Assembly: GCA_973895155.1 (NCBI GenBank) | Contig: OZ316897.1 | Span: forward strand, 7,492,470-7,556,469 | Length of the DNA stretch: 64,000 nucleotides | DNA from: Marsupella aquatica | Lineage: Eukaryota > Plantae > Marchantiophyta | Reading direction: 5' to 3' | Shown here: positions 5,335 through 42,384 of the stretch, piece by piece | Layout: each line of letters begins with the position of its first letter | Position numbering within the stretch: the stretch's first letter is position 1 | Translations under genes and position numbers: made by a program | The notes under the pieces: generated by a model | What the model was told of the DNA's origin: nothing | The model's input: the letters and a program-made list of their open reading frames with translations, nothing else | The model's database searches: none

Positions 5335-5535
5335 TATTCATAGTTGATGAAACTACTTTTAGTAGGTGGAAATACCGTGTGTTGATGGAACTACTATGCG
5401 TTGGTGGAACTATGGTGCGTTGGTAGAATTACTGTAGTTGGTAGAACTACTATGCGTAAGTGGAACTACTGTGTGTTAATGGATTTATTGTAATTGGTGA
5501 AATTATTCATATGCATTGGTGGAACTATTGTAGTC
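5335..5535. repeat. degenerate ~20-bp minisatellite (GTTGGTGGAACTACT...)
   Basis: About 10 imperfect units such as gttgatggaactactatgc, gttggtggaactatgg and gttggtagaactactatgc. Confidence 0.7.
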
Positions 5536-9145: not shown

Positions 9146-12100
9146 ACCTCATATGAAGAGTAATGCCACTTCTTGACATAAATAACTCTATTAAATTAAA
9201 CCTACCCATGCTTGGATGTTGACATAATTAGATTATGCCCTTTATTTTCTCTTTTGGCTTCTAATTGATCCATGAAATAGTCTAAAGCTTGTGTAATATA
9301 CGGCACTTCGAAAAGGGAGTTTGCTACCCTGCTGTTTATTTTTCTATTTCTCTTTCCTTCGATATCATTGTGCTTTGTTTGGTACTTTTTTGAAAAGAAT
9401 CGTAGAGTGTACTGTTATATAAAGACTAACAAAATCTTCTACAACCGGAAATTTTCTTCCAAGATTTATCAGGAATACTTTTCTAATAAAAAAGACACTG
9501 CACCAAGACCTCAATACAAGTATAAAATTGAAAAGGCAAGGATAATAATATATAGTACCTCTTGTATTCCATGCACTAGAGGGAAGGGGCCAAGATCAAG
9601 CATCCCCGTTCCCATTTTCCAGTCCATGTGTCTCCCCCCTCCCTTTTCTCCTTGATCCCCAACCTCCCCGTTCCCCACAGTTATGTTGGGCCTCCCCTTC
9701 TCCATTTTGCTTCCCAGTCTTTCTTTGCCATGGTAGATGTCCAATTTTGTACTATGACCATTGTAGAAAACCATCAATGGGACTGTTTGTCATTGTTTGT
9801 GGGTGCAAAAGTCTCATCATTTTGGCTAAGTTGTTGTTGCCAAAATGTTCACTGAATTTGCTTCGTTTCCTTTCCAGTAATCTTCTTAAATAGGTGATTT
9901 TGTTCTAGCTCGGCCCTTGAGATCACAGCTTGGATCACATTATACAGCCCAGGTGCACCAGTGAAGACTACCTCTTGCCTTTACCCAATTTTGAACACGT
10001 CTGAGCTAGTTGTTTTGGTACTCCTTTGGTATTTCCGATAGTGAGTTACTAGGGTTGCTATGCTTTGCATTTTTATTGTCAAATTAAAGGTGCTTTCCAG
10101 CTCTGCTTCTTTGTAGTCAAATTTTATTGTCAAAAATAAAATGTTTTTTCCTGCTCTCCTTCTTAGTCCCTGGCAAGAAAAACTCGGTCTCTCATGAAAG
10201 ACTACATTGATTGGAAAAATCTCAACAAAAAAATCATCTCAGTTTGCCGATGCACCTTGGCAAAAGCCCTTTTTGGTTTGCTGGCGTTTCCTTTTGCAGC
10301 TTCAGTACATGTGTCTTATGTTTCTCACCCGCATACTATTTGTTGCCTCTTCTATACTTCATTTATACTACCATACTACTCGGTGTTCTTTCTGAGAAGT
10401 AAGTGCATTTTCTTTTCAAAGGGTCACATCGTTGATTACTCCTTGTATTATACTCGCTTTTAACTGCTCCTGCCTATATTTTCACACTTCCTTTGTGACC
10501 TGTTTCCACGTTCGTACTCTGCTATTGTAGATGTTTTGGAAGCATTCGCTACTTCTACTTAAAGTAATTATCTATCAGTCTGACTGGTCCCTTGCCCTTT
10601 TGCTGTACTAGCGATAATTTTCAAGAAAAATAGATTTCTAGACCAAATCAAAATAAATTCACCAAGAAAAGTGAGATAGTCTATACACATCACTCATGTA
10701 TCTATAGTTTCATTTGCTTTCCTCTCTCTTGCAACCACAGCTGCCATTATAAGAGGGGTCCTGCACTTACCAGTCTTTATTTATTTGTCTAGGTGAACAA
10801 TAACCTACCTTGAAGGCTCTCCCACTCACTTCCCAGCATAAGCACTTGGTACCCTAAAATATTCTTTTTAAGCTAGGTCATATCTACATTACACAAAAAA
10901 TTGGATCATATCTTTGCCTGAACTTTAGTTCAATATTGTGATGGGCCTGATAATGGCCCAAGAATGTATTGTCAAAATAGCATCAACCCTGGAAAGTTAG
11001 CTCAATGGTTTATTGTAGACAGACCTACACGTTAATTATAGAGCATTTGTCATATATAAATAATTGGGTGGTCTTAATTGCCTTCTTGTCTCCGGAATTA
11101 AAACACTATTTAGTTTGTGTTGTATAGGGTCATTTTTTAGCCTCTTCATGCACTCTATCTTGCTTATCAAAATAGAATAAAAATGTGTTGAGAGAAAACT
11201 TTTAATTGAAAAGCAGATGTCTATATGATGAACAAACCACCTTACAAGGCTTCAACTTTGTTCATAATTCTGGCGATAACATGGAAAATAACAAACCTCG
11301 AACCTGACAAGTACGAAAAATAATTTTCCAGCGTGGACAGTCTAGTACGGAATACCAAATGTTGCACATTGTTTTTCTTAGTAAAACACTCATATTTTAC
11401 AAAATATATAAGATAAAGGGTATTGTATTTTATTTAAATTGTGAAATCATACAAGTTCCAAGAAAAAAAATCACTCTCCTTTGTTAAAAAAGGGGAGATA
11501 TTTAGGGACTATGAATAATAGGTTGGACAAAACAATTTCATAGGGTTCAATGGTGGGTAATAAAAGTTTGTTTTTTTAGATTTAGGCTTGAAAATTTTGT
11601 AAAAATGTTGGACATATTATGTTTTGGAAGTGCGGATCACTTTTATGGAAGAAGTGAAGATGGCAAGGAACATCAAGGAGAATTATAGGGTGACTTTTAA
11701 TTCAAAACAAAAGGTTTAAAAGAGTGACATCAAAAACAAATTAACAATATACAATGATGTATGAATATTTTACTTTCCAACAAAAAATTTGCACAAAAAA
11801 ATATTTATGCAACCTCAAAAATAAGAGTATGTGACCGCAGAACCACAAATAAATTAAAGTTTTGACCAGTGCACCAAATAAAAAATTCCACCGCCATACA
11901 AACAAAAAAAACTCGCACTAAAAAAAAACCCGCCCCATCAAAAAATATGTGCATGTGAACCTATAAATTTTGGGATGATAATTTTATTCAATGTGTTTTA
12001 TTTCTACGCGCCAAAAAAAAACCACCCACCCTAACATTCAGGGACCAATGGGGAGATAGCCAATGATTACATTTAACTATGGTTACATGACATGGATTTC

Positions 12101-14581
12101 ACTAGACATTGTATTGTATAGTATTGTATACATTGTACCTCTTTGCTATAATGGAATCAATGCATTATTTCTCCAACATGTTGTGGTTATTTGGTGAAAG
12201 AATACCAAGCCTACTTACTTGCTTGGCCAATTATTTGTGTTACTTCAACTTATTGGCATGAATATTGCATATTACCAGTGAAGAAATAAGTGATAGAGGT
12301 TACAATTGCTTAGTGACATGAGAGGGACTAATTGGATGTAGAGACTACCAATGGAGAGACTTCACCAAAATGAACCAGTGATGAAGTATCTCAAGATTTT
12401 GCTAGGAAGTAGACTCTATAGTTGCCAATTTGAGAGGTCAGAGCCCATTTGGGGAGTTGCTTAATGTAAAGCCCCCACAAATACGTGAGAATAAACAATT
12501 ATTCTACAAACAAAATGTATCAATTAAATTAAAAACCATTTGCATCTTTTTTATACAAATTTGAAAAAAAATGAGTACCTTGCTAATTCATAATTTTGTC
12601 AAAATTAGATTAGTAAATATCTTTGGTACAGTCAAGTCTTTGGTTATAATTAGTAGCCCAACTATATTTAAAAGATTAGCCTTCTCTTTTTGCATCACAT
12701 TCTAATAATCTAACTTGCCAATGATTCCCTAGGGTAGAGTCCAAAACATCTTTGAATCTACTCCTACTTGGCCTAGCTACTAATGTTCATATATAGAAGA
12801 CGAGGAACAATGTGAGTGAAGGTGATATTAATTGGCAGATGAAAGTAGTAGTGGATTTCATTCATCTGCACCTAGTACTGAGAGGTGCCCCCCCCCCCCC
12901 CCCCCCCCCGGTTTCCCCAATCCTACTATGGTACCAATTAAGAGAGGATAAACTTGAAACTGAAAGACATGAAGAACTGAATTTGCAGACCTTAAGTGTT
13001 GATCAAACCCGTTCTACAATCTACCATTGCAATAAGGAAATGAAGATGAGAAGATTCAACTCATACCTGCTCATATGTCCTTGGAGCTCTTAAGTATCCG
13101 GAATGGGACGAGTTCTTAATTGGCTCACAAGAATAACCAATAAACTATGGTGAGCATGTTGTAGATTGATTAACCATAATTTCTTACATTATGAACTTGA
13201 GGGCATTACTTCTTGCTTTGGAGTATCTCAAAGCCATTTTTGCAACTATCATAGCTCTTGAGCCATAACAACATCACTACCCTTTAACCCTACTTTCATT
13301 GACACAAGAACCCATACTTAGAGGGTCTTTTGCTATAATTGATGATGAATTATTATTTGTTGCACCTATGATCTATAAAATGACAAAGTTCAGAAGCAAT
13401 CAAGGCCTAACTTGAGTATGAAATCTCCTACTTGATTTGGATGCTGCTGTTGGAACGTAGACTAATTTACTTTCCTCAGTGCAAGCTATAACTCTAGTTC
13501 ATATTCCTTTGTTAGATGTGTCTTCTAAGAAGAAAGATGCAAATAGGATTACGACAAAGATACAAGAGGAAATAATGGAGGTTATGGGGGGGGACCGCAA
13601 ACCTAGTCAAACCATTTTCAGAAGAGCAATTGTTTCTATCTTCCATTGCAGTGTGCTACAATTTGGTAGACATTGTAAATAAAGTTGTACAAATTAAAGG
13701 CTTAATCTACTATGGTTGCCTCATCATCTCACCTAGCTTATTGCATGACTGTGGGCATATTGTTAAGAACTCCCATCGTACGAATCATACAAATACCTTG
13801 TAACAAAAATTTGAGCCATTTTATTATGATTTACCTTCTTAGTGTTTGGTTCACAGCCTTTTCAAAAATTTCTAGGTTGCTCCACCTTTTTTGAGGGGCA
13901 GCTCCTTCCTTTCACTTTCATAAACCATTCATGTTGTAAATTAAAATTGTGTCCTATATAGCCCTTGTTTTTCTCATATATTGGACAGCATGGCTGTAGT
14001 ACTGGCAGCTAAAAATTAATAATAAAGGTGTTTCATGCAACGGTGCTCCATATGGAAAACTTGGGGTCCAACAACTTAGCACGTATGGATGAATAGTTTA
14101 ATTTGCAAAATAACCTCAAATAGTCGATGTTTACACTAGGTCTTTTTGATGCACAAATTAAAAGAGCCCATTGTCCACCCTCCTCTGCTCTACTCTACTT
14201 TTAATTTTTCGGCCAAATTCAAAGCCTTGTTGCTCGGATGATTCTCTTGCGACTACTGTATGTTGAAGGTGAGCCCCAACAAGCTCTTCTTGATAATATC
14301 CTCTTGTCCAGCTAAGATCATCAGTACATTGTCAAATAACAAAAATAATTGCAATAGTCCTGATCACTATATAGAGAACTAACTTTTAACGTCTGATAGC
14401 AAGTTGGTCCACCTCCATGCCAAGGTGCTAACTAAGCCATGCAGAGGTGGCACTCCACAACTATTGCTCACAAAAAGGCCTCTACTTAGACAAATTTAGT
14501 GACTCTTGCATTTAGAGGGTTAAGATATGCATACTCAATGATTTGAGAAAGAGCGTTAACAAAATGCAGATTCAGGGCAAC

Positions 14582-16514: not shown

Positions 16515-18465
16515 TCATGTGTGGCCAGTTCTATTTCTGATAGTCTGGAGTGTCTGGTCCAAGGTATTCAAAGCCCATGACCTTTCTTCTGGCAAATCAT
16601 TAAAATTTAGTTGTTGATGTACATAGGCTGTCAACCCCATAGTGGCATGAGAACTACTTTCACATTCAAGAGAAAGCAGCAAATGCATTTTGAACTTGTC
16701 CTCCTCCGATAAGACTCCAATCTCATTAGTTTCATATGCAAAATCACGGATATCACGAAGACTCTGCACCCAAAAAAAAGAATTTGGTGAATTGGAAATT
16801 AATGAAAAGAATATGCAACCAAATAAAATACATTTTGCTTCACTTACCTCATCGTCTAAATCTTTAACACCATGTTCAAAGTTTCCATGATCATCATTAT
16901 GATTCCAATAATCAGTGCCAATAGTCTCGATAATATCATCTGCATCTTGAATATCAACTTGACCTTCTTCAGGATATGGTGGAGGTAAAACTATTTTAGA
17001 TTCTCTCTCTCTTGCTTGAAAAGCAAGTTGAGGAATGTGTGATGGCCTGTTCACACCTCGTTCTCGCACCGCTCTCACTGTATGGGCATTCCATGTTAGA
17101 ATGATATCATTTACAGCATTCTGAATGAATGGAAAAAGTACAGTAACAATGGAGTATCTATGCAAGGGATTATCCATTTGCAAAAATCCTTCCTCGTATG
17201 ATAGAGTACGAAATAAGTCCTTATAATGACCCAATCCTTGTTTCTTCAAGAATCCCCAAAATGCTTCGATCCTCTGTAAAAATCACAATGATTGTAAAAA
17301 ATTAGTATGTTCCTTGAAATCCTTTTTTCTTTTATAAGTTAAAGCCACAAAAACCCCGTGGCAGAGGGGAAACAACCAGGCCATCAAAAAGCCAGCTAAA
17401 CAACATGACCCCTGGGAGGGCGGGCAGAAAGCATTAACAACGTACATAGACAACAAATCAGCATCGCGGCCAATGCAACATTGGGCCCCCATAAGTCCCA
17501 TCTAGGCAAAAAATTAGTATGTTAATAAACATATCAAGCAAATAATTTTGATAACATGTAGTTGAGTTTAAGTACTACCTGATTATGAACTGAAGAACCT
17601 TTGCGAAAACAATGAGTATTTGGTCTTGCCCTTTCAAGATTATTTTGGACCAAAATATGCTCAGTCGCATAATCAGAACGAATTAATAAAGGATGACCAA
17701 ATCTTTGAACCGCATTTTTATACCCTTCATAAATAGTCCGAGCTTTCTTATTTAATGCAACATGCATATACATAACATAATCTGTAGCTCCATCGATAGC
17801 TCCATGAATTCTAATTCCATAATTTGCTAATTTGTCATATGTTGCACAAGAAATTAAACAAAATTAGTACATAATTTCATGATCATGAACAAACTATCTG
17901 AATCATATATAGTCAAAAAATGATTGATTCAATCTAAATAAAAGGATATAAATACTTGAATTTTACTCACAGTCCATATGCCAAATATGCATTGCTTCGG
18001 TGACATCGTAAACCCGACGTATTAGACATCCGCGTGCTCTTGATGCAAGTAATCCTCGAACTAAAACATCCAAGGCATCACGTACAAGCGTTCTTGGAAC
18101 TTTGTATCCAGCTCTTTGTAATCATGCCTTTATCATTCTTATTCCCCAATCTTTTGCATATCCCAATATGGGAATAAACTCTAGAATCAATTGCCGAACC
18201 TCCTCAAGCGTATATGTTGGATACATTTTCTCTCCATTATTAAATACTTTCAACCATCGCCATAAGGTAATTCAATCTATTCCAAGTGCTAATGCACATT
18301 CCTTCATAGTGTAACCGATGTGAAGTGCTGCCATCACATCTTCACACATTGAATTGATGTTTGTTGCATCCATATATTTCCCAAATATTCTCCAAAACTC
18401 CAATGAACTAAATACTTTATTTTGCCAGTGTATAATTCCACCTTTTTTAGAACAATTAGAGAACT
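16515..18465 (-). pseudogene. IS3/IS481-like (IS3EU-type) DDE integrase-core transposase, multi-exon, disrupted
   Basis: Spliced reconstruction: HTH (ECALALGID*ITLWRWL), WGIRMIKA*LQRAGYKVPRTLVRDAL, RRVYDVTEAMHIWHMD|SYDKLANYGIRIHGAIDGATDY...LIRSDYATEH...GSSVHNQ|RIEAFWGFL...LTWNAHTVR. Putative DDE residues are in WHMD, RSD and RIE. Introns at ~17842-17970 (acceptor AG mutated to AA) and ~17274-17579. Two in-frame TGA stops. Confidence 0.8.
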
Positions 18466-18992
18466 CTGTCAGAAAAACAAAGGTCACAAGACAAGAAAAC
18501 AAGGCTAGTTAGAAAATGTACACTAAGTTGCCATTGCACATACAATAAAGTAGGAATATTTTTAGCAAAAAATACCCTGGATTTACAAAGGGATTTGAAA
18601 ACTATGGAGGGCTCTTTGGTATATTCAATGCCCCAATTTAAGCTCTTGAGAGCATCTATTACAAAAATAAGCAAAGATACAAATGGGCAAACAAAATCAA
18701 TATATAACATTAAAAATTATGCTCATTATCATGACTATGAATCATGTTTATGCATTTTCATTTGAAAATGTGTAGGCACTACCTAGCTTCTCATTAATTG
18801 CAATCCCAACTATGTATACCGGTTCTATAGGGGAACATCTGTACGAGGTGGCGTGCATATCTTTTCCACGAAGAAAGAAAATATCCCCATCTAATATTGG
18901 AATCTTTATTCCATACTCAATAACAACTAGATGTCCACCTCGTTCCTCCATTGAGGGATTTGATGCCATGAACATAGTGTATTTACTACAAT

Positions 18993-21900
18993 AACAAGAA
19001 GCCTTAAAGGGTGAGTAACAAGCCCAAACTCTAAGCACTCTCGTAAAAAAATTGTAGAAACAAAGAAAATGGCAAAAAAGTGGCCAAAAATACTACCTGT
19101 TTTTTGACAAAATTATAAAACAAACTGAAAGTATTAAAATGACACACTTTTTTCACCATCTCCTAATTACAAAATGATCTCAACTTACTTTTGATAAAAT
19201 TACTACCTATAATTTTACTATGCCATTTTAGCAATTTTTACCAAAACATGATTTGTATTTTTAACAAATGATCAAATTACCTCCATAATTTATTAGACTT
19301 GGGAAATTTTCAAATTCATAAAATATGATCTCTTTTTGACTCTCCAACATGCGCCCCTTCACTCTTTGAGGAAGACTTTTCAATGGAAGATGATATCTCC
19401 ACAAATTCACCACCTACGCTTCCAGATGTACCCGTTCTGATCCAAATCAGATCACTCAATGGCTCCTCTTTTACTCTCAACCTGGCTCTCAACATGCCTG
19501 AGTTTGATTTGTTAGGCAACATCTGAATTTCACAAACATATTGACCCAACTGGGCTCCCCCAACCTCTTCTTGGGGACCTCTTCCAAATTCTTATTCTTC
19601 CCCTTCAAGTTAATTTCTTGATATTGATTGGCTTCCAATCTCAGCCAAATGATGCAAGTGTGCCCGGGTGACCTTCTTGTGATGATCCTTTCCTTGCCGG
19701 AATTATTTGCAGCCTCAGTAGGTCTTCTTGTGTCCCCGCTTGTGTCAGCGCTCTTACACCTTCCTGGAATTTGAGAGATGTCAGACGACCATATTCACTC
19801 TCTCCCCTTGGTGCTTGTTGCAACGCTTGACCTTTCCAAAATGCACAACAATCTGGTTTTGAGACAGGACTTAGTGTTTTTAGAAACTTGTTACAATCGG
19901 TCTTCATGAATTCATGAGTCCGCTTTCTCAACTGTCCACTATCTTGAAGACCCTTGAGTCGGACACCCAAATTAACACTAGTCTCAACCACATGGGATAG
20001 AACTTAACGCCCGGGGAGGCTAGTGCTCTCAAATGAGTGAGAAGAACTTAATGTAGACAAAACACACAAAAGAGCAAAAACCCTTTAACTTGAAACAAAT
20101 GAAATAACATGTTTTCATGAATAGAGGACGCCTATTTGAACTTAATTGGTCCTTTGTCTAATTTAAATGAATAAGAAATGCTTAAATCATTTTTCAATAA
20201 TTAAGCCAATCCTTTCATGACATAGATGAACAAGTCAAGGAAAAAGTTGAAAAAATTATATTTCCAAAAGTTTTTTATGACACAACACTTTATTAATTAG
20301 TCTTCTTGGCTACTAGGTGGTATCCTAGTCCTTTGACTTTTTGGCTTGTTGGGCAACTTAGGGCTTCTTTGGGCCTTTTCCTTTCCCCATACCTCCCTTT
20401 ACTAGATTGCTCAATTATTAATCTCACAATATTGTTTGGACTACGCAATCCAGTTTACTTGGAGATATAAATCATTTTTAGGTTTGCATTCCCACGTTTC
20501 ATGAGGATAAACATTGGCATTAAAAACCCATATGTTTTTGCCCACCAGTAAAAACCCATATGTTTTTGCCCACCAGTAAAAACCCATATGTTTTTGCCCA
20601 CCAAGATACGTACTTCCATGACTCATGATTGGAGAGTTTGTCTTGTTGACCTACTGTTTCCATATGCTTTTTGGAATATTGGCATTTGGAGCACTTTTTG
20701 CTTTTATTTCACCATATTTTTTGCATTTCTTGAGATTGAGTGGTTTGTCTTTATCCCCTTTTCTTTCACTTTTGAAGTCTTTCTTTTTGGCTATTCTGGA
20801 GATTCTCTCCCTAAGATACCTTATTCTCTTTCATGAATTCATGAAGGGGCTACCACCTGGGAAACTGAGAAACCAAAAGCTTCATGAATTCATGAACCCC
20901 AAAACTGGTTGTGACAAAATACAAAGGGCAAAGACTCTGTTGCAGGCTCAATGACCTACAAAGGGCTAGGGTAGCCAATTGGCTATGGCAAAGGAGGCTG
21001 CGGCCTGGAGAGGGCTATTGCCCCTCACTTAAGCTCAAGTCGCATCAAGGTGCTGTCATCAGCTGCCGATTGAGGTCAGGCCTAATTTATGGTCTGGGAA
21101 CGACTGCTAATCTCTGCTGTCGCCTTCAAAATCCTGAAGCTGAAATTTTGAATTCCTGGTTTGATGTTGATGCTTTGATTGCTGGATTTCACCTGAGTGT
21201 TGGACTTTGATTTCTCAGATTTGGTTATTGAATGAGCTTCTACTGTGATTGACTGCTGCTTGAATTAGCTGTGGTAGACTCTGATTAAATGAGACAGATT
21301 CCAATTAGGGGAGATAGCCACAAAGGATCAGGGATAATTTGTGAAAAATTGAGCTTGAGAGCTAGATCTCAATCGAGCAGACCTAAGGATTGAAGGGGGA
21401 GCGAGTGGAGGATGGGAGAGGGAGCAAGGGAGATTGGAATGGGATTGATAAGGATTGGAAGGGGATTGGAAGGGGATTGGAAGGGGATTGGAAGGGGGGC
21501 CATTTAGGGATTGGAGGAGGGTGGACAATCGACCGTCAGGGGAACGATCAACCATCAGAGGGGGATGGAGCACCGGAGGAGGGCAGTCGAGCATCAAGGG
21601 GATGATCAAACATTGGAGGGGGAGCGGTAAAAGATCGGGGGGGGGAGGGTTTAGGATTGGGGAAGGGTTTCACTAATCAGGGACCGGGGGAGGGCCGATC
21701 GGGAATCAAGATTGATCCAGGGAGGATTAAGGGTTGACCAGGCCTGGTCTGGGTCAAAAATGAGTCCAAGGTGGATGGATTGGGAGCAGAAGCAAAGAGA
21801 ACTATCGAGCTTGGGGGAACTAACTGGAGGGAGCTAGGAGGATCAGGTAGCTTCTTTCAGGTGAGAACCCGGCTTCATGATTTCATGAAGCCAGGTGGCT

Positions 21901-22398
21901 GCCCAAATCAAACTCGATGTACATTTCAATATTGGTATGGATCAAGAGAGTGGGGAGGACGTGAAGCGCACCAGAGTAGAGGGTGCAACAGAAGATGTAA
22001 CTATTGAGCTAGCTCGGATTGAAGCAAGGATCTTCTAGAAGTGGAGAGGAGGTTAGAGAAGCCTTAGATTAGTTGAGTTGCATTGTATTTAGAGATTTAG
22101 TGGACTTAGATGCACACCTACAATGGATAGTGGCATTCTAATTAAGATTTTGAGTTTGCACAAACTCAGATCAAAGACCGTAAATTTTATGTTTGTAATT
22201 AAGTATGGATTTGTTGTTTTTGGTAATTGTGAAAATGATGTTGAAAATATCCCAAGATTTTCATTGAAAGAATTATAATAGCAAAGTTCACAAAACATGT
22301 TTCATTTTTATATGTTTTTTTAAAGCACTTTTGGAAAAATCATGAAAATCTTGAAAAAGGAATTCGGGCCTTGGACTCATCCCTTAAGGCTCCATGTT
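18993..22398. mobile_element. non-autonomous TIR DNA transposon, 3406 bp, 4-bp TSD CAAT
   Basis: Imperfect ~39-bp TIRs: AACAAGAAGCCTTAAAGGGTGAGT... and (reverse complement) AACATGGAGCCTTAAGGGATGAGT.... CAAT at 18989-18992 and 22399-22402. Excision restores the TET reading frame. No recognisable transposase inside. Confidence 0.8.
20522..20603. repeat. ~28-bp tandem repeat x3 (AAAAACCCATATGTTTTTGCCCACCAGT)
   Basis: Read directly; the unit has an AAAAAC..ATAT..GTTTTT hairpin core. Confidence 0.85.
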
Positions 22399-24412
22399 CA
22401 ATCATGATCATTATGAACTATATTACAGTAGTTCTTTGTAAGAAATAGAGGATATGCTGGTACAACATGTTTCACAACATCGGGCCTGGAAAAGTATTGA
22501 CGTAATTCTTTGCTTAGATCCATGAAAGGATCTTTGCAATGCAAAAATTCCCTCACTACCGGCCAAAAATAATCACAAAATAATAGGAAAATAATTTCAA
22601 ATAAGATTCGATGGGAGCATTGCTCATGAATTAACTCCAATTGCAATGCACTAATCGGAGTTGTATCAACAATCTTTAACTTATCCCTGTAGTAACTCAC
22701 AAAATGTGCTCCTTTTCCTTCTCTCCAATTCACAAGTGGCCCCACAACTCGCATTGTTTCAATCAATGCTGATCTCGAATCAGCTCTACGAACAGTCCAT
22801 TTGTGATTGTAGGCATCAATTATTGAATGCCTTAGAAATGGTCGATCGCCCTCTGGAACAACTCCTTTCATTCTCCCCCCTATTATTTCATTGGTAGACC
22901 TATCTTTCCAGATTTCAATAGATGACAAGGGATCCATAACATAAAAGTTACTTGGTATCACCTTCCATACAATATGTCGTTCTGTTTTGGGTGGGCTAAA
23001 TCCTCTCTCAATCAAGAAAGCATTTTTATGTTTCACAAGAAACTTAGGGCTTCTCTTCGCAAATGTCTTTACTGGGATTTTATGTTCTTCAAATTTTTCA
23101 AAATGATCTGCCTTCCAATTTATATATAAAATTGGATCTTTACAAAACTTTCGGACCCTGGTGGCAATCTCATTCCCAAGCGAAGATAGATTGTACCGGA
23201 AAGTGATCAAGTGGACTATTGTTTTCCACTGATTGGCAGTAAAATACTCAGACCAACGACTGGTTTTCCCCAAGAAGTGAAAACCAGAATAAAATTTTGA
23301 TAACTCTTCCTTCATTTTCCCACCGGAAAAGATGTGCACACCATATTCAAAGAGTAACCAATCACCGAGCAACCATTTCAGTAAAAACTGAATATGTAAT
23401 TTTCCCAACTGAGATGTAAGAGTGATGAGCTCACAGAAATAAATAGCAGCCTTAGGAAGAGGTTGGATTTTGATGATCATTAAATTGAATCTGCACAAAT
23501 AAGATTATTGATCAACATAAAGTGATAAAGAACTTTTACTAATTTAGTATAGTTTACTAGTTAATCAATATTTTGCTTGACATCTTGGACCATAGTGATT
23601 TCAAATCGAATTTGAAGCATATCAACGCCAGGCACTGAGGATTCCAACAAAAATAATCTGAAAGTTTCACCCCCCCCGGAATATCAATTCTTCTTGATTT
23701 TACTCACAAAACTATGGTCTCCAAAATATAGCAATATAATGATGATAATTAATATCTTATAATAGATTGTATATTATTGGCAACAAGTTAAGATTCTTAC
23801 CATTTCATCAGATTTGGGAGAAGTTTGCCTTTTCTTTCCCCTTCTTTCATTTACTTTTGCATCATTGTTACTCAATTTTAAGCCTTTCATCGAATCTGCA
23901 ATGAATGACAATCTATCATGAATATCAACTTTTTCATATAATTGTTCAAACAAAAAATAACACTAACCATTCGCATATCAATCACAGGTACTTATTTGAC
24001 ACATAGAATTACTTTCTATAGCCTAATCTTTAGGTATGTCTATTTCTTGACATAATTATTTTGGATATTGTTTGTATTAACGTATTCCAAACTCCATCAA
24101 CAAATACAAAATTGAAGTATGCAAATTGCATGCATGCAACAATAGATGAGGCAAAAAGAGAAATGATCACCTCGTCACCACAAATTAGCCAGTTTTCCAA
24201 ATCTAAAGTTGTCTTCAAAATTGATATCTCTGCACTTTCCAAAAAATATATCAAGCTTAAGGTCCCATTGGCCATAATACAAAATCTAGTGGATCCAAGT
24301 TACTATGAGTCCTCCAAAATATTCTCAATAAAATTTAAAATTTTTCACTCTTTTGTCCTTTCCTAATTTGATGCCCTATGGTGTTTTAGTCAAAGAGTCT
24401 ATTGGATAAACT

Positions 24413-25099
24413 TTAGAGCCAAGAAATATGATCATGAACAGGGGTCTGCAAAGTGGGATCAATGGGATGGAGATGACAATAGAAGAACCATCTGTCAACT
24501 CCATGGGCACTATGATCATATATCTTTCGATCACAAGCATATCCTTCTGCCTGACATTCCTTCAAACAGTAAAAATGCCACATTGTGGGGCATCGAATGC
24601 AATGGACAGTATCTGTCCAATTGAGGTCATCATGTTCACCACATGCCTTGCATGTATGTAACGGGCAGATAGGGGTGTGTGATGGCAGACACGCACCGCA
24701 AAAAAACCTTACACAAAATCTATCTGAACATTTTCGAACATATTGTGGAGAGTCAAGAGAACCCTCCAAATTCCCCAACTTTCCACATTGGGCACACTTT
24801 GCATGTTTATGTATGCAGTCTTTGCACTTCCACTTCCCATGTTGGCCAGAAGGTGGGGGAAGGCCGACCCCTGGACAATTATTCTCTGCTGCATGCAGAG
24901 ATTGTGCATTGAGATGAAAGTGCTTCAAGCATGGTCCGTCACAAATGACTAACTCTCCACCATCATCACAAATGGCACAACAATGGGCTGCTTTTTGGTA
25001 GATTTGTTCGCGTGAAAACTTCAAAACATGTGGTCCAAACACAGCTGAATGTCTCACCTCGCCCTTATCTTTTCTACATGGTTGTTTAGGACGAGCCAT
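24413..25099 (-). CDS. EDM2-like tandem PHD/Cys-His finger protein, 228 aa, intact
   Basis: CAICDDGGELVICDGPCLKHFH...WKCKDC...CAQCGKLG...VRKCSDRFC...CPLHTCKAC...CIRCPTMWHFYCL...YCHLHPIDPTLQTPVHDHI is collinear with the PHD region of Arabidopsis EDM2 as recalled (CAICDNGG...CPLHKC...CRRCPKSYH...YCxxHEIDxxLxTPVRDH). A splice acceptor TGCAG sits 2 nt before the ATG. Confidence 0.85.
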   Translation of the reverse strand: MARPKQPCRKDKGEVRHSAVFGPHVLKFSREQIYQKAAHCCAICDDGGELVICDGPCLKHFHLNAQSLHAAENNCPGVGLPPPSGQHGKWKCKDCIHKHAKCAQCGKLGNLEGSLDSPQYVRKCSDRFCVRFFCGACLPSHTPICPLHTCKACGEHDDLNWTDTVHCIRCPTMWHFYCLKECQAEGYACDRKIYDHSAHGVDRWFFYCHLHPIDPTLQTPVHDHISWL

Positions 25100-25219
25100 G
25101 CCTGCACATCCATAAACAAAATGAATTGTTAGAAATCATAAAAAGTTGGGATAAACTCAGAACTAACAAACCATCAAAAATACACAATAATACTACTATC
25201 ACTAGTACATTTTTGCTCA

Positions 25220-25625
25220 TTTTCCGATGCTCCCGCTGAAACATGAAACAGGCGTCCGATAGCCAGAGTTACGCAAACTTTTGTTCACAAAAATATCGGA
25301 ACTTGCGATCCCCACAGCTTCGGAAACACAGTATCCGATTTCCAAAACATCGGACATAATTTGCGATACTCCTAATATCGGAACATATCCGATGTCTTGA
25401 CTATCGGACCCCTCTTCTAAAAATTGTTACTAAATTTCCGATCCCTGAAGTATCGCATTTGATGTCCGATTGAGTAAATTACGGAAATATTGCGATCGAA
25501 AATGTATTGCTTAGTGCTTCCGATAGGTTGGGTATCGGAAATGTTTTCCGAAGTAGTGTGTATCACAAATAAGTCCGATGCTACAAGAATCGGAAATGGA
25601 GTCCGAAAGGGTTTATATCGGATAT
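25220..25625. repeat. CACTA left subterminal motif cluster (ATCGGA/TCCGAT, both orientations)
   Basis: Many TCCGA/TCGGA copies; mirrored at 34365-34860. Confidence 0.75.
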
Positions 25626-25885
25626 ATGTAGTTCGAGGTCAAGATTTGAACAAGGATGGGCTTCCGTTGTTTTAAGCATGGGAAATGGTATCAGGAATAA
25701 ATGGACGTGACTCAAATGCATATATTACTTAGGGATTGCAATTTGGATTGTGTCAAGGGACTATATACAGTTGTATCCAAAATTATATCCAACCAATGAA
25801 TCTTTGGGCATGTGTGAAATGACATGACAAAATGTATATGATATCCATGAAGATAAAACATATAGGGGTTTTACCTAGGTCGCAT

Positions 25886-28800
25886 CTATTGTAATGAGGG
25901 GTCCAAATCCTCTACTACAACTACACTTGGCTTGTCTTGAACAATGGATCGTGAGCGAGGGATGTAAGGCATAACAATGGACCACTCTGGGTCATTCGGA
26001 TAAGGAAGATAGAAAGATTGCTCCAAATGATGGGGAAATGCAAATGGATCTGAGGTCCTCCAATTGGAACTAATGACACTAGTTGCACTGGTCTTCAATC
26101 GTGTGAACCCACATGCATCTTCTTCACAGGTCCGATTATGGCCAACAAGATTCATCCGAAACCATTTGCACTTGAACACCACCTCCTCCAAGGTTGTATG
26201 GGCATGATAATTTACGATAAGAATCTCCTCTATCTTCCCATAGTGGGCCACAATTGAACGTATTGGATTCCGGTCAAAAGTGCTACTTTGTGACTCTTGG
26301 GTGAACCACCCCATCACCCCACAATCTTGTGTTGCTGCTCTCTTCATATCAAGATGTTGGATTCGAAAATGCCTCCCCTTTGACCACATGGCTGTTCGAG
26401 TCGTGACCATGAGTAATGGACCATGAACAAGGGTGCGAATGTCATTGGTGACCTTCGGAAAGTGCAAAACACTCTCACCCTGACCCAACAAGGCATCAAT
26501 CTCTGTCAACTTCTCCTTCATATATGGGAGAAACTTGGGGAAGAGGCGTGGCCGACGACTATTACTCTTCTCCTCCTCATAAAATGCAGTCCACTCCCCT
26601 GCAATCTCTGGTGAGTTATACAACATGAATGTGGTGAGTTGCAGACGTTCAGCAGAGCCTAGTAGTCGTTCTCCCTTTGCTCCAGTGAGTCTATCCTCTT
26701 CATAATCTACCTCTCGTGCTGACTCATCTATCCAACCCCTTGGAGCATTTGGATCAAGTGTAGCCACAATGTTCGTACAATAGAACATACTCTCTGCTCC
26801 AAGGTGACGTTCGGCAATGCTACCTTCCACCCTAGCACGGTTTGATACATTTGATTTCATGACTCCCATGAATCGCTCTACCCAATACATCCAACGACAA
26901 TGTACTGGGCCTGCAATGGCTACTTCACGCACTAGATGTACAAGAAAATGAACTTGACCATCAAAGAAGGAAGGAGGGAGTGCTCGCTCCAACTTGCACA
27001 CAACCTCCACTCCAAATACCTCAATGGCAGCAATCTCTCCCTCGTTGACCTCCTTTTGACAAACCCATCTCAACAATCTACCCAATGACCAAAGTGCATC
27101 CTGAAGATCCTCGCTGCCCAATCCAATAATAGCAACTGGAATAACATGCTGCAATAGACGATGATAATCGTGGGTCTTCAAGAAAGCTGGACATTTTGGA
27201 GAGTCATCTCCACCAAATGCCTTGCGAAGATTGGCACCATACCCTGTAGGAAACCGCATTGACCCTATCCGCTTGCGAAACTCTATTCGCTCACTCCTTG
27301 TGAAAACCCATGGGGGATGGATAGTAAGGGGAGGGTCAGGGTCCATAGATGGCCAAAAACCATGAAGGCCATGCATCCCCATCTTCTCACAACTCTCCCT
27401 CCAATTGTTGTTTTTCTCTCCATATAGATGGCGGATCAATGACCTCCCAACATTCCCCTCAATATGCATAGGGTCCAATAGATGATTTATCGGCATGTGT
27501 TCCCAATATGGAAGTTGTGCCAATGCAGACAAACGGGTCATGCCACATCTAGCCAAGGGTAATGGGTCATCTGGATCAGTCACCCTCTCCCATACCTCCT
27601 TCCAATATATTGGGTCCTTCGGTAAAGGTTGAGGTCTTGTGTCTGGCTGGCCCTCATCCGTGTCATACAAAAATGGATCATACCTCCAGTCATGCCCCTC
27701 AGGAAGATACTTTGTGTGACCAATGTAAACTATCTTCCGCAGGGTGGTAGACTTTGGGCGTGCCACTCCCTCCAAGTCTGGTCCACAAGTTGGGCAAGCA
27801 CGATATCCAGAAGCTTGCAAGCCAGAAATATATCCAAACCCTTCACAAACAATGGTCACAAATTAAAACCCATTAAGTTTTGAAACCAAACCAAAGGGAA
27901 AAAAAATAAACAGAACGATATATATATATGGGTAGCTGCACAAGCCATACTTAATTTATAAAGAGTTGCGTACCTGGAAGATCATGCATGGTCCACATAA
28001 GAATGGCTTTGAGCTGAAACTCACGGGGTAAGCCCCCTGTATGCACTCGACCATCATAGCAATCCACTCCCCCCCAAAGTTTCTATAGCTCCTCAATCAA
28101 CGGTTGCAAGTATACATCAATCTTCTTCACTTGCTTAGGGCCAGGAATAATCATAGATAGGAGCAAATGACCCTTCTTCATGGCCATCCATGGTGGGATG
28201 TTGTAGTTAGTGAGGACTACTGGCCATACAGAGTATGGTTTGGCCTTGCCGGCCAGTGCAAATGGGCTAATGCCGTCTGATGCCAAACCAAGGCGAACAT
28301 GACGAGGGTCAGTCTTGAACTCACCCCAACGCTCTTCCACAAATCTGTTTGCAGGAGAGTCAACCATCATGCGCATGGTTGGATCCTGAGTAGTGTCTGA
28401 ACGGTGTTGGGAATGCCATACCATATACTTAGCCAACTCTGCACATCGAAACTGGTGACGCAAACGAGGAATAAGGGGAAAGTACCTCATAACCTTTTGA
28501 GGTACTCTTCCTGTCAACATATCCTCACGATATCTTGGCGCGTTGCACACAGGACATGTAAGAGCATTTGAGTGCTCCTTCCTGAACAAAACACAATCAT
28601 TCACACAAGCATGTATGACCTCATACTTGAGGCCTATGGACTTCAACACTTTCTTTGCCTCTTTCCATGATGCTGGCAAGTTATTCCCCTCTGGTAACAT
28701 ACGATCATGCAATGTCCTGAAAATATCATCAAGAAGCAAGTTGCTTGCTCCATGTCTTTGCTGCAAGTTCAGTAATAACATGATTGCTGAAAGACGAGAT

Positions 28801-29136
28801 AATCTAGACCCCTCAAAAAGACGAGTCCGTGCATGCTCTTGAGCCTCCTCCCACTGGTGCAAGTGTCGATTCCGTGAAGGAGTATGCCTATGAGGAGGAG
28901 GTAAGTCAATGTCCTCCCAGTCACCTGGGTCATGATCACCCCGGGGATCACCCTCATCTGCATCCATGAATTGGTGCATCAACTCATCCATAGCCCGGTC
29001 CTCATCCACTCTTTCTTGGGTAGCATTAGGTAGTTCATGTGGAATGTCCATATCCTCAAAAGGTTGACCCCCTTGCCTACCATCCATGGCCTGAAGGAGA
29101 TGTTGTCGCACAGCTCGTGATAATACCTCAATATCT
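25886..29136 (-). pseudogene. CACTA TnpD/Tnp2 transposase (Transposase_21 + DUF4218 + DUF4216-type regions) with one premature stop
   Basis: IHACVNDCVLF, TCPVCNAPRY, YFPLIPRL, VRLGLASDGISPF, SVWPVVLTNYNIPPW, IDVYLQPLIEEL*KLW, WTMHDLP|G, LDPMHIEGNV, KTHDYH, GPVHCRWMYWVER, VVFKCKWF. Intron ~27846-27973; TAG at 28083-28085. Confidence 0.92.
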
Positions 29137-29325
29137 GGCTGAACAAATGCATTCTATCATACACAAAAGAAAACAATGAGAATGATATAAGTCCAGGTCT
29201 CTCAACCAACAATTGAGACATCCATATATGAATGAGTCAAAAGACTCCATAGCTCTTGAAACCAATTAGAGAATGACTCAAGTAATATTTTTATAAAAGT
29301 GAACATATACACATGTTTGTATGTG

Positions 29326-30261
29326 CTATGAAGGACGACACCGTATGGCCATCTTAGGCGCGTTCCAATCATAGTCACAAAAGAGTTCCTCACCAGCCCT
29401 AATAGTCCTAATGGCTACAGTCATAACATGGTCATCCATATGCTTCACATAGTAAGGTGGTGGCGGTGCCCCAAAAATCTGAACCCACTCTACATTTGGT
29501 TGAAGTCCTCGTCCTCTCCCTTTGGTACTATTGATATACCCAGCGATGTTATCACATCACACAGGATCACCATCAATCATCCTACAATGCCAAGGCCTCT
29601 TGAGGACCTCATCCGGATCGGAATCCATTTGCAATGCATACACTCCCCATGATGGTTGTTGCCGTAAAATAATGTTCCAATTCTTGGCAGTGTATATAGG
29701 GCCAATATAAGGAAATAAGTGTTCCCCATCATAACCTCTTCGCCATGGCTTTGGATGGACCACAATGTCCTCCAAAGCAAATAACCCAAATCCTACATCA
29801 ACACCAAGGGAAGATGACTGCACTATCCAATGACGGCCCCATATCTCTATAGGGGCATTAGTGGGTATGCCTTGAGGGATTTTGAATATCTCAGACGAGA
29901 AGTCCTTCACAAGAGGCAATGCCTTTCCAGAGAGATATGACAATCCCAACCTACCCTCCACTACCACATAACCCTCACCTGGCTTCATCATAGGCGGACC
30001 TACCAAGTTTGGGTCTTGAGACTCACGAGTGCCCAATGGTTCATAATGTCTCCTATGCCTATGGGAGCGTGGGCCGGTGCGTAAAACCCTAGATGGAGGT
30101 ACCTTCAGGTCACCTTGCTCAATGTCCTCCACCCTTGCTACAGGTACACTCCCACCCTCACCTTTGGGGCATGGGGCAGGAGGAGGCGGTGTAGATGTTG
30201 ATGCAAGCATCCGTCTTGCACTAGCCAAGAATGTGTCTAGCCATAGCTCTTTAGAGATCAA
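29326..30261 (-). pseudogene. SET-domain protein carried inside the CACTA element (one in-frame TGA at 29557-29559)
   Basis: Read-through translation: QSSSLGVDVGFGLFALEDI...PYIGPIY...MIDGDPV*CDNIAGYINSTKG...QPNVEW...VMTVAIRTIRAGEELFCDYDW. This shows the SET motifs GxGLFA, YxG, (R)YINxS and GEELxxDY. Confidence 0.8.
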
Positions 30262-31413
30262 TGGAGGAGGGGCCCATCAATGTGAAAATTAATCACATGT
30301 CAAAAATCTTTCCCACTCATATTAAGTACCCTAAATACAATATGTCAAGATTGGAACCTAGTTTACACTAAGCGAATAATTAAAAATAATGACTGTGCAT
30401 CTTACCTAAATGATATCCGCACTGAACAATGCCTACTAGGATCTTGGCCTTAGAATATATCCGAAGACAATATCCGAAATGTCTGCACAATTAAAGGAAT
30501 ACCATCAGAATTTATCTATACATATGTCCCCATAGAATCATATCCACTATATATTGTGGCCATCAATGAAAAAAATTCAGCCAAATATATACTTAAAGTG
30601 CTCACCTCCAAATGATAAAGGGAGTATATCATACCTTTCGGATGCACGGCCTATCGCGATGCATAATGCATTGCAAAAATGGACCTACAAAAATACAAAC
30701 AAAGAGAACGACCCAACCCTCCGCAAAAAAATACTGCACAATACACGCACATGAGGTTAACTTTGTTTGGCCCCCAAAATTAAATCCACATACAAGGTGG
30801 ATAAATTTGTCAAAACTTTTAATGTGAGTGGGTCAATGATCATACCGTTCAACCCCAAAAGTATGTTGTTGTAAGGGGGACGTTACCGCACCTATAACCG
30901 GATTTTATTCAAGAACCCCACCGCCCAAACAAAATCCGGCTACTCAACCAGGCCTACAATTACAATGCAAGTTTTCACATCAACTAAACTTACATTTCCT
31001 TACCACATCCTCAGCCCCCCCCATTGACTAACTTATTATAAATCCATCCTTAAAGGCATAAAAAATAATGGACAAGCTAAGTCCGATCATATTGGAAGAG
31101 GGGTCCGATACTTTAAGCATCGCTATTTCCGATCCCATTTTCGATAGTTCAAGTATCGGATGTTCCAATTCTTAAAAAGTCGGATGGAGGGCACAATAGG
31201 GTTTGGTACTTTTCCCGACTAAAGTACGAATGTCTTTGTATCGGGCTTGGTTTCGGATGCAACTTGGGAGGAGCTGCTGAGTGAACACAAAGTGGAGGAG
31301 CACGCATTGGAGGTCGAGGCTATGGAGGGGAATGGCACGGCTGGGGGGGAGGAGACGGAGCAGCCAGGGTGGGTGGAGATGGAGCAGGGCCGTCACAGCA
31401 GATCTCGGACATT

Positions 31414-34110
31414 ATGGCAGAGATTTTCAAGAGGCAAGCAGGCCTGTCTGCTGAAGCTGCGGCCATAGCAGCTCAATTGACCCAGGGCCTGATTGACGAA
31501 TCCAGGCAATCTGCCATAAGTGAAGCAAAGAAGGCTTTCATGGAGAGGCTAGAGAAAGGAAAGGAGAAAAAAAGAAAGAGGAAGGAGGAGAGGAAAGGCA
31601 GGCCAGTGGAGGCCCTCTCACCACAAGAAAGAGAGAAGAGGCTTAGAAAGGAGGCTCGAGCTGCAGAGAGGGCAAGGATTGAGGAAGAGAGGCTACGAGC
31701 AGAGGAAAGGGCCAAACGGCCAAAATTGTTCATTAATAAGGGAGGAGCTTCGATGACAAAGAGCTACAATTTGTTCAGAAGTCAGCTAGGGCAGGTGTTG
31801 AGGGCAAATTTCAGCCCCTTAGATTACTGGGGGAAGAAGAAAGAAGAGGAGAAATTTCAAGCAAGGGAGCAAGTGAAGGAGCGATTCTGTATTGGCTGCT
31901 TCCTGGATGATCGATGGCTGAATAAGAAGATCTCACGTTCACTTGCAGATAGACGTAATAATGTGAGAGAAAAGATGAGGAAGTACCTGGCAGATTGTAA
32001 GGAGGAGGCAGAGGTGATCAGGCAGAGAGATCCCCCGGATGAGATACCAGGTGATGCCTGGTCTGCTTGGATTGATGCTGAGCTACAGGTTCGTGCTTGG
32101 CAAGCGAGACGTCACTGGCAGGCTGAGCTCGATGAGGCAGAGAAGAGGGTCCTTTCAAGACAGACTGTTGACATCCCCCTCCTGCAGCAAAACTTAATGG
32201 AATGGGAGGCCAAATTAGCACTGCTTGGAGACCCTCCACTTTACATTCAAAATGCAATTGAGAGGGTGGAGAAGAGACCTACAGTTACTCACCGAATGGG
32301 GCAGGGTGGAGCGCATCGTCTCAAAGCAGAGTTTGTAAGTCCTCTGCTCCCCTCCTCCTTGCGCGCCTCCTTGCTGAATTTTTACCTTGAAATTGGGTCC
32401 TCCCTCTCCCTGATCACCTCAGGCACAACCTTGGCTATGCCTGCATAAGTCCTCCCAGACCTCCCCTCTTATCCCTGTGCGTTTGTTATCGAGCCTGTAT
32501 CGCAAGTTTTGATGTGTCCTTATTTTTTTCTGTTTCCGATTCTATTCCGATTGCTGAAGAGTCGGAAATGGAGTGAGACTCTCTCTTATGGGTTTTGGAC
32601 GCAAGGCTTCCGATTATGGTCCGATTACCTGAGAATCGGACCCTGCATCGGACCTTAGGTTTTGGGGTTTAGGGTGGAGGGGTCCGATTAGGGAAGCATC
32701 GGAAAAATTCAAAATTTTGAATATTTGACTGTTTTAGGCCACGCCGGGGGGTTTTTTTTTTTTAAGGAGTGCCGGGCTTAGGTTGTCGTTGCTTTTTGCG
32801 ATAGTTAGGCCACAATAATAAGGGAGTATTTTATATAGGTAGAGTGGGTAGTGATACCCATGAGTTGAAAGGGATGTGGGGGTGTTAGGGAATTTTTCTA
32901 AGTAATGTGTGGGGCTAGGTAGGGATTATTATTCATTAAGTAATGTGGGGGATTTGGTAGGGATTAACTTTTAAAATAATGTATTTCAAGTAATGGGGGG
33001 GTTCAATTTTATTCTCATTTGCCGGGGAGGGGGGTTAATTATTATCTTGAGTATGGTGCAGGAGCAAGAGCATGGACGCCCAATCTTGCCACCTGAGAGA
33101 GAGTTGGCTAAGAAATTTGGAACGCGGGCTCTGAAACTTCACATGCAGGACGAGTTGGGGTCGGTAAGTATATGCACAATTGAAAACCATATTTCTAACC
33201 TTTGATGCAACATGGTTATAATCACTCCCTTGTAGGTCATTTTCAACACTAACACTTGGGTTCATGGTTGCTTACATGTATGTAGGAGTCAAATGAGGAG
33301 TCAGAGGGTTTGGACTCAGCCGAGGAGGGTTCGGGGGCCTCAGATTCAGAGTCTGAGGCTGAGGAGGGGAGTGTGGCACCCACCCCTGTTCGCTTGATTG
33401 GCGGCACATCCCGAGGGACTCGAGGTAGTCATTCTAGACGGAGGACTGATGGTGATGTAGGTGGCCGTAGAGCAGCAGGAGGTAGTGGGGGTGCTACAGC
33501 TGCTAGAGGTGGTGTTGGGACAAGTGGTAGTGGGCGCCGGGGCGGTTTTGATCGATCTGCAGGTGCTGGTGGGCGGGGTAGTACTGGGGCCCATAGTGGT
33601 TCTCACAGGCCCGGGTCTGGTGGGGGGGTTGGTAGTGGGCCCCATGGTGGTTCTCGCCGCCATTCAGGGGTTGTTGGCGGGAATGGTTCTCGCCATTCAG
33701 GGGCTAGTGGTGGAGGGGCTAGTGGGGGTGGGAGCACTGCTCGTGGTCATTCAGGGGCCAACAGGGTGAGTGGGACTGCAGTTGGTGGCATTGGTGATAG
33801 GACTCCATCTCACCAGTCAGGGGCTAGTGGAGGTGCAGGGTCTCACCACTCTGCAGCCCAAGGGGGTAGTGGAAGTGCATCATTTCATACTTGCTCCGAT
33901 GCTGGGGGTGTTACAGTGCCTTCTCATGACTTAGAAGGTGATGTTGGTGACGTTGGTACCGCGATAGCTCCAAGCACCACAGCTGCAACTGCATCTCATG
34001 CTGTCATTGATAGGGTCCTAGGGTTAGTGCCAGATGCCACTACCCGACCAGAGAGTTATCGCCCTCGTGCCAAGAAGAGGAAGGGACGACATGCACCAAC
34101 ATATGGATAG
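31414..34110 (+). CDS. CACTA TnpA-like accessory protein; exons 31414-32334, 33062-33163, 33286-34110
   Basis: Canonical GT-AG junctions that keep frame. Coiled-coil region, DPPDEIPGDAWSAWID and THRMGQGG (Transposase_24/PTTA-like), then a Gly/Ser-rich tail. Divergent from TnpD. The true start may be ATG 31322, shifted by an indel in a G run. Confidence 0.65.
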
Positions 34111-34364
34111 GCCAGGTAGCTTAGCATAGGACCATTTGTAGGTAGGCCACGATACCATGCAGGTTGAGATGGATTATACACCTGTACATGTAAAGGTTGT
34201 ACTTTCCATGCTAGAGGAGGCCATCCTCTTTTGTATATATAATGGCAGGGGTTTCCCCCTTTTGAGTCTCACTACCATTCTTGCTACCCATGCTCACTTC
34301 CATGCATCCCAACATTGTAACCCCCACACCCCCAAAATTAATAATCAGAAATTTTACCCCTTCA

Positions 34365-34860
34365 ATTATCCGATACTCCTCCGATCTTAAAAATATCCGA
34401 ATGTCCGATTCTCCCAAACTCGGAATTTGCCATCCCCAGAGAATCGATCTTTTCGATACCCTTGGTTACGGTCTTTCCGATACTTCTAGTAACGGTATTT
34501 TTGATCTTTATAACAACGGTATGTTCGATACTTTTATTTACGGTCTTTGCGTAACCTTTTGATACGCAATATGCGATATTCAAAGTTACCCAAAGTCCGA
34601 TTCTTTACGTATCGGAAGTGGATCGGAAGTGTATCGGCTCCCCTCTTCCATTTCCGATTTGCAGAACATCGGACGGCTGATTTTCCATTATTTTTGGGTA
34701 CGCAAAGTGCGTTAAGTTTTGTATCGCAAAGTCCGATTATCTTCCGATTGTCGTTATTCGATGGGTTGAGAGTCGGAATTTGCGATACGTTTAGAGTCGG
34801 ATGAGATGTTTTTCTTGGAAAAATTTTACAAAGGGATCCGAAGGTGTCCATGTCGGAAAT
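34365..34860. repeat. CACTA right subterminal motif cluster (TCCGAT/ATCGGA)
   Basis: Dense TCCGAT, ATCGGA and TTCGATAC copies. Confidence 0.75.
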
Positions 34861-34944
34861 TGGCCTCATAATGTACTAGTGTATTCAATGAGCTATTCAA
34901 GATTCATGTACAAATTAGTTGCATACTTCAATCTACATAACAAG

Positions 34945-37855: not shown

Positions 37856-37871
37856 ATCAGCCTATTCATTA

Positions 37872-38205
37872 AAAGTGTATTATTATTTGATTTATGTACA
37901 TTTGGGCAATGAAAAGTGTACTTTTGGGCTTGAAAAAGTGTACATTTGGCCAATAAAAAGTGTACATTTGGGGATAGAAAAGTGGACAATTGGCCTAAAG
38001 AGTGTACATTTGGGCAATGAAAAGTGTATATTTGAACATCAAAATAGGTACATTTGGCTTTAAAAGTGTACATTTGGCCTAGAAAGTGTACATTTGAGTG
38101 AAAAAAACATACATTTGGCTCAAAAAGTGTACATTTAAGTGCATTTGGTCTAGAAAGTGTAGCTTTGAGTGCAACAAAGTGTACATTTGGCCTAAAAAGT
38201 GTACC
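37872..38205. repeat. left subterminal repeats AAAAGTGTACATTT (~14 copies)
   Basis: Read directly; spacing about 21-23 bp. Confidence 0.85.
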
Positions 38206-42195: not shown

Positions 42196-42384
42196 TCCTA
42201 TAACGTATTCACCTGCACAATTTTAAATGTAAAGTATTAGTTAAGAATGGTCCCAACTAGGAAGCACATAGGTGTCAACCCTCTCCAAGGACAGTGCGCA
42301 TATCGGGATTATCCCCATCAAGCAAAATAATAGGTCCCCAAAAAGTCCCTATCTAGCCCTAAGATCCCTGATCCCAATTTAGAC

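Follow-up and report, generated by a model that had tools for sequence, protein, structure and literature searches.

In a 64,000-nucleotide stretch of the liverwort Marsupella aquatica (contig OZ316897.1, positions 7,492,470 to 7,556,469; referred to below as the window), three genes lie head to tail and co-oriented on the minus strand between positions 16515 and 25099, in the order PHD zinc-finger gene, TET/JBP-like dioxygenase gene and rva_4 integrase gene. Tentatively, we read this block as the decayed and immobile relic of a cargo-carrying transposon of the IS3EU/GingerRoot type, which would have captured the TET gene and probably the PHD gene as well. The parts of the block are as follows.

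16515..18373, minus strand: rva_4 DDE integrase/transposase pseudogene (putatively IS3EU/GingerRoot-type), in the pieces 18373-17966, 17863-17537 and 17282-16518.
18748..18988, minus strand: 3' quarter of the TET/JBP-like gene, with the distal His (MHATSYR) and the stop codon.
18989..22398, no strand assigned: non-autonomous transposon bounded by ~24-nt terminal inverted repeats (TIRs), 3,410 bp long, inside the TET gene.
22399..23504, minus strand: 5' three quarters of the TET/JBP-like gene, 54% identical to residues 45-399 of the homologue P0001 and ending in HNDHD (the HxD iron motif).
24413..25099, minus strand: triple PHD (NSD-type) zinc-finger gene, an intact, stand-alone open reading frame (ORF) of 228 codons.

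The layout of the block supports this reading. Once the 3,410-bp insert is subtracted, the three-gene span comes to 5,175 bp, which agrees with an earlier interpretation made from the DNA letters only (the sequence-only reading), where three head-to-tail minus-strand genes within ~5 kb had been noted. The TET stop codon is separated from the integrase ATG by 374 bp (18374-18747), while the PHD stop codon lies ~0.5-0.9 kb ahead of TET, all on one strand.

The TET gene itself is split by the 3,410-bp element, which is flanked by a duplicated CAAT (18989-18992 and 22399-22402). The empty site is found in contigs from four public sequencing runs (X1-X4, from two studies and two labelled organisms) that align to the window at ~99% identity: in all four, position 18988 is joined directly to 22399, with a depth similar to the flanks, and the TET reading frame is continuous. 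Contigs of the insert sequence are ~5x deeper than the flanks in these runs (depth is not equal to copy number). The 3.4-kb insertion proposed in the sequence-only reading is thereby confirmed, and the element entered the TET gene recently, or in the assembled individual alone. Inside it there are 28-bp tandem repeats (20518-20603) and Pro-rich pseudo-ORFs.

Sequence searches with the dioxygenase gave few leads. Neither the TET ORF nor P0001 (479 amino acids, from the public Logan contig L001) matched any Pfam family, Tet_JBP included; phmmer with the TET ORF against PDB sequences returned nothing below E 0.29, and a search of the ESM Atlas with the same ORF gave weak cupin/JmjC leads alone (score 0.8). 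P0001 is colinear with both TET pieces of the window, 23498-22399 (54% identity) and 18988-18751 (44-59%). Its alignment to the 5' piece starts at 23468, which does not fix the exact start of the gene, and its C-terminal part (L001 2025-2264) is 59% identical to the 3' piece over 80 amino acids. The exhaustive search and the fold prediction were run with P0001, a natural and intact homologue, and not with a joined version of the two window pieces. An exhaustive phmmer search over 1.8 billion representatives found 27 relatives of the TET family; the ten that were checked in the cluster table were all labelled 'hypothetical protein' at most, and all lie on short contigs.

It is the predicted fold that points to a TET/JBP enzyme. 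The AlphaFold model of P0001, made with the family alignment, has a mean pLDDT of 70 and a pTM of 0.71, and its best Foldseek matches in the PDB are CcTet (E 2e-7), CMD1 (E 5e-5) and NgTET1 (E 2e-4), all above generic 2-oxoglutarate (2OG) oxygenases. In VIA-align the model scores Z 13.7 with TET2, 13.4 with CMD1 and 13.3 with NgTET1, with 205-250 residues aligned, against Z 12.4 and ~175 aligned residues for AlkB, so that the margin to the TETs is modest, at ~1 Z. The model shares with the four TET/JBP enzymes the double-stranded beta-helix and the HxD...H iron triad, which in P0001 consists of H395, D397 and H445. In the window, HND closes the 5' part of the gene and MHAT lies in the 3' part, and in the family as a whole HxDxD is present in every member covering the region (in the stricter alignment A2) and H(G/A)T in most members that reach it. 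The family differs from CcTet, CMD1, NgTET1 and TET2 in its low sequence identity to them (9-14%, with no sequence match in Pfam or the PDB) and from the solved TET/JBP enzymes in an extra helical N-terminal region of ~190 residues. It also differs in that the canonical 2OG-binding Arg, some 10-15 residues past the distal His, is not evident: in the family alignment no Arg at +10 to +15 is conserved, whereas a basic residue at +5 is common (Arg in most members, Lys in P0001). TET/JBP-like is therefore the best-supported fold assignment for the predicted dioxygenase, by a modest margin, and to that extent the sequence-only reading, which had placed the gene in this clade, finds support in the structural matches.

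For the PHD gene the matches are to NSD proteins. The protein and/or its homologues match Pfam PHD-1st_NSD, PHD_NSD and PHDvar_NSD below the gathering score, while a family profile (the window protein plus five homologues) run against the PDB matched NSD2 residues 650-839, i.e. the PHD1-3 region, at E 1.5e-9 and the PHD region of NSD3 at E 1.9e-7. The five homologues are 217-226 amino acids long and 39-69% identical, with all Cys/His residues invariant and a conserved C-terminal DHISWL. Because the homologues are similar in length, with invariant Cys/His and a conserved C-terminus, the protein belongs to a conserved, stand-alone family of ~220 amino acids. Their length also rules out that the ORF is a fragment of a large EDM2-like gene, which was considered as a candidate.

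The third gene gave Pfam matches to rva_4 (E 6.5e-16 and 9e-8) and rve (E 0.0045) in its pieces. This rve-clan rva_4 match bears out the IS3-like DDE transposase proposed in the sequence-only reading and suggests an integrase of the IS3EU/GingerRoot type. Among annotated proteins, those of the liverwort Calypogeia fissa come nearest to it, at 45-47% identity; over the comparisons made, identity to the Calypogeia proteins is 45-57%, the order of the coding pieces is the same, and the DDE-bearing pieces are conserved. Because it is interrupted by two in-frame TGA stops (18274-18272 and 18124-18122), the integrase is a dead pseudogene. At both positions the Calypogeia gene on L010 has Arg, which makes the TGA codons look like C-to-T decay.

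In the same Calypogeia fissa locus (L010, CBCUJL010000003.1), a perfect 63-bp inverted repeat (1-63 and 12070-12132) surrounds a HECT ligase gene (Pfam E 1e-9) and, on the opposite strand, the rva_4 integrase, the stop codon of which lies ~630 bp from the right repeat arm. The left arm is truncated where the fetched sequence ends, and the element is >12 kb. Judged from its sequence, L010 is a GingerRoot/IS3EU-like cargo element, from which we conclude that the elements formed by the rva_4 integrase family are large, hold cargo and have their transposase at one end, in agreement with the published GingerRoot/IS3EU lineage (PMC6839031, PMC10045372). In such elements, the DNA directly upstream of the integrase would be expected to lie inside the element, and in the window this is where the TET gene is found.

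Two further Calypogeia loci carry neighbouring units of another kind. On L007 (4974-8358) and L008 (12179-15535), a 3.4-kb unit with coiled-coil ORFs adjoins a 3.1-kb integrase unit, in opposite orientation and on opposite sides of the integrase unit in the two loci, and no TIRs were found at the borders of these units. At a distance of ~3.5 kb from an integrase copy in Calypogeia fissa there is also a block (L008 4516-5932) with 74-81% DNA identity to window positions 4564-5335, non-coding and with stops in all frames, which may be a shared repeat.

Several results weigh against a single transposon. Terminal inverted repeats and target-site duplications (TSDs) were searched for around the integrase by itself, the integrase together with TET, the full trio of genes and the wider window, with nested insertions excised or kept, TSD lengths of 4, 5, 6 and 8, and blastn-short for inverted arms. 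Chance-level pairs were all that was found for any gene combination: for a 6-bp TSD around the block the best pairs had 12 of 16 matching bases, and GingerRoot TIRs of 100-150 bp would have shown up plainly. This agrees with the sequence-only reading as far as no termini were visible by eye there, and contradicts it as far as the three genes were taken to form one mobile unit. The linkage of the genes also does not recur in any related locus that was fetched, contrary to what that reading would lead one to expect. Five integrase loci of Calypogeia fissa, taken with 10 kb of flank to either side, contain neither a TET-like nor a PHD gene, and the window contains no HECT remnant. The contigs with TET homologues (L001, L005, L006, L009 and L013) have no PHD gene in the 0.5-2.3 kb upstream and no integrase in the <=2.3 kb downstream, where it should be kept in mind that some of these contigs may be transcripts (no poly(A) tails were seen on them) and hence uninformative on linkage. 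A metagenome scan with the TET family returned one locus, L009, without neighbours of interest, and on L002, a metagenome contig, the gene after the PHD homologue is BRCT-like and not TET. In fact, beyond spacing and orientation, no support for one transposon was found.

Depth and base composition do not suggest an element that was recently active or shielded either. In the four runs the contigs of TET, spacer and PHD have the lowest depth of the covered stretch, and there is consequently no sign of recent amplification, while a low copy number is hinted at. Observed/expected CpG in the block is 0.35-0.58, compared with 0.74 at the window's genic left end. With CpG thus depleted, nothing points to the long-term shielding from methylation that the sequence-only reading had implied.

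As far as is known, 5-methylcytosine is removed in land plants via DME/ROS1 glycosylases. Land plants are not known to have TET enzymes, and the literature searched contained no report of TET/JBP genes in liverworts. TET-carrying transposons have been published for fungi only, where TET/JBP genes are found in eleven lineages of DNA transposons, including IS3EU, and are proposed to aid escape from methylation-based silencing (Kojima 2025, PMC12730594). The statement in the sequence-only reading that such linkage is known mainly from KDZ/Plavaka elements is thus outdated, since TET-bearing IS3EU, hAT, Harbinger, EnSpm and Helitron elements occur in fungi as well (PMC12730594). The fungal IS3EU elements with TET, found in Pucciniales (rusts) and in the truffle Tuber indicum, have in common with the block in Marsupella aquatica an IS3-like DDE transposase gene beside a gene for a TET/JBP-type dioxygenase, and in three of their families TET is oriented as the transposase is (PMC12730594). 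They are complete, however, with a 6-bp TSD and TIRs of >30 bp ending in TAYGG..CCRTA, whereas no termini were found here, and their TET gene sits between the transposase and an alpha-kinase gene, whereas the block has a PHD gene and no kinase (PMC12730594). Moreover, the block resides in a land plant and its transposase is dead.

GingerRoot/IS3EU elements occur in bryophytes and lycophytes (Cerbin et al. 2019, PMC6839031; PMC10045372). They share with the block an rve-clan, integrase-like DDE transposase and can be large (3.9-12.9 kb) with captured genes, and they are characterised by a 6-bp TSD, TA..TA termini and 100-150-bp TIRs (PMC6839031, PMC10045372). These defining termini, TIRs and TSD were not found here, and neither TET nor PHD cargo has been described for GingerRoot. 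By analogy, the fungal TET-bearing IS3EU families, together with the presence of IS3EU/GingerRoot in bryophytes, would provide a precedent for a relic of this kind. A looser analogy is VANDAL/VANC, a MuDR system of Arabidopsis, with which the idea of a transposon-encoded factor removing the DNA methylation of its own element would be shared; VANC is a sequence-specific DNA-binding protein, whereas the TET-like protein in the window is a predicted oxidase.

If the block is indeed what is left of such an element, an IS3EU/GingerRoot transposon would have picked up the TET gene, and probably the PHD gene too, in the way the IS3EU elements of rusts and truffle did. A functional element of this kind would be cut and pasted by its transposase, and the dioxygenase would oxidise or otherwise modify 5-methylcytosine, either on the element or genome-wide, which could weaken methylation-based silencing, while the PHD protein might steer the dioxygenase to marked chromatin. 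The present copy is immobile, given the two nonsense codons in its transposase and the lack of any remaining termini.

Whether the three genes ever belonged to a common element has to be weighed against their having met by accident, which is nearly as likely. Insertions and deletions would then have placed a truncated IS3EU/GingerRoot fragment next to a PHD gene and a TET-like gene, three unrelated units with no functional coupling. The region is clearly a nest of independent insertions: a CACTA element (25200-34881), the 3.4-kb TIR element that interrupts TET and, within a satellite, a TIR element of 12.2 kb (37858-50020). With at least three independent transposable-element insertions in the neighbourhood, accidental adjacency is plausible. 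The missing shared termini and the lack of linkage in any related locus fetched point the same way. Such an accident would, on the other hand, have to account for the very tight spacing on one strand (in particular the 374 bp between TET and integrase), and for the fact that the integrase family bears its cargo upstream of the transposase, where the two other genes lie. It also seems possible, but unlikely, that the PHD and TET-like genes are low-copy genes that serve the chromatin or DNA of the plant, domesticated or not, and that the integrase is adjacent debris. This would fit the intact PHD ORF (the family of which is conserved in length and Cys/His over 39-69% identity), the TET frame, which the four runs (two labelled organisms, ~99% identity, lowest depth of the stretch) carry without a break, and the confinement of decay to the integrase. 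Against it, TET is knocked out by a transposon in the assembled individual and a CACTA element sits 100 bp before the PHD ATG, neither with a visible consequence for the plant. The 13 listed TET differences between window and runs (8 non-synonymous, 5 synonymous) give no clear sign of purifying selection, being too few to judge selection, and in addition CpG is depleted as in silenced DNA and the three-gene stretch is present in no RNA run.

The sequence-only reading went considerably further than a relic, in that it proposed an active IS3EU-like transposon, which senses its own dimethylated histone H3 lysine 9 (H3K9me2) through the PHD protein and demethylates itself through TET. Its gene content and order, and the analogy to fungal TET-bearing transposons (PMC12730594), are the only points in its favour. 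For this copy it is contradicted by the two nonsense codons and the missing termini, and further by the interruption of TET in this genome, the depleted CpG and the lack of any RNA run with the stretch, so that we consider it very improbable. A weaker version is less remote, though still improbable, namely that liverworts have an IS3EU/GingerRoot family with a 'reader-eraser' cargo, of which this locus is one dead copy, and in which the PHD protein, NSD/EDM2-like, would direct a divergent TET-like oxidase to the methylated chromatin of the element itself. If true, this family would be the plant counterpart of the fungal TET-bearing transposons, with a targeting subunit added. As for the claim that the anti-silencing design is new, the combination of TET with IS3EU is already known, since it was published for fungi in 2025 (PMC12730594); what would be new here are the plant host and the PHD partner. 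Should the locus be a relic of a TET-bearing IS3EU/GingerRoot element, the capture of DNA-oxidising enzymes by transposons would reach plants, with a chromatin reader as a possible partner.

An Rfam scan of all 64 kb gave no match. The other features of the window are the following.

25200..34881, minus strand: complete CACTA/EnSpm element of 9.7 kb; each end is a perfect 12-nt TIR, CACTAGTACATT, and the TSD is TAT.
34931-37858 and 50023-50825, no strand assigned: 375-bp satellite array of about 8 and 2 units, starting ~50 bp past the right end of CACTA.
37858-50020, no strand assigned: 12.2-kb TIR transposon with the ends CAGCCTATTCATTAAAAGT and its reverse complement, and the TSD ATGAT at 37853-57 and 50021-25.
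59849-60601, minus strand: Pogo/Tc5-like DDE_1 transposase ORF (Pfam E 1.6e-5) of a DNA transposon.
64-537, plus strand: basic helix-loop-helix (bHLH) transcription-factor ORF (Pfam HLH E 1.2e-5), in the CpG-richer left end.

The CACTA insertion, 100 bp upstream of the PHD ATG, is separate from the three-gene block. It contains Tnp2, DUF4218 and DUF4216 ORFs, the Tnp2 transposase being split over 29111-28083 and 27859-25886 on the minus strand. That this Tnp2 transposase beside the PHD gene belongs to a separate, nested element had escaped the sequence-only reading. Its subterminal repeats, TCCGAT(N9)ATCGGA, occur 15 times in the window, and all 15 lie inside the element (0.06 expected by chance). 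A second, older CACTA element around the three genes was considered as well and is excluded by the confinement of both the TIR motif and the subterminal repeats to 25200-34881. On its plus strand the element has a Lys/Glu-rich ORF (31369-32448) and a Gly/Ser-rich ORF (33310-34110), and a minus-strand ORF (29557-30261) has a stretch that resembles a SET domain by eye (GFGLFA...), for which Pfam gave no match. With CACTA removed, ~150 bp remain between the PHD gene and the 375-bp satellite array.

This array is split by the 12.2-kb TIR element, which has 22-bp subterminal repeats containing GTGTACATTTGG and, on both strands, a number of large ORFs, among them a DUF7869 ORF (38452-40017) and one resembling NIF/CTD phosphatases (48462-49595). 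At the left end of the window, the bHLH ORF is probably a host gene, and towards the right end the Pogo/Tc5-like ORF is flanked by long inverted repeats (56753-58951 and 61641-63906).

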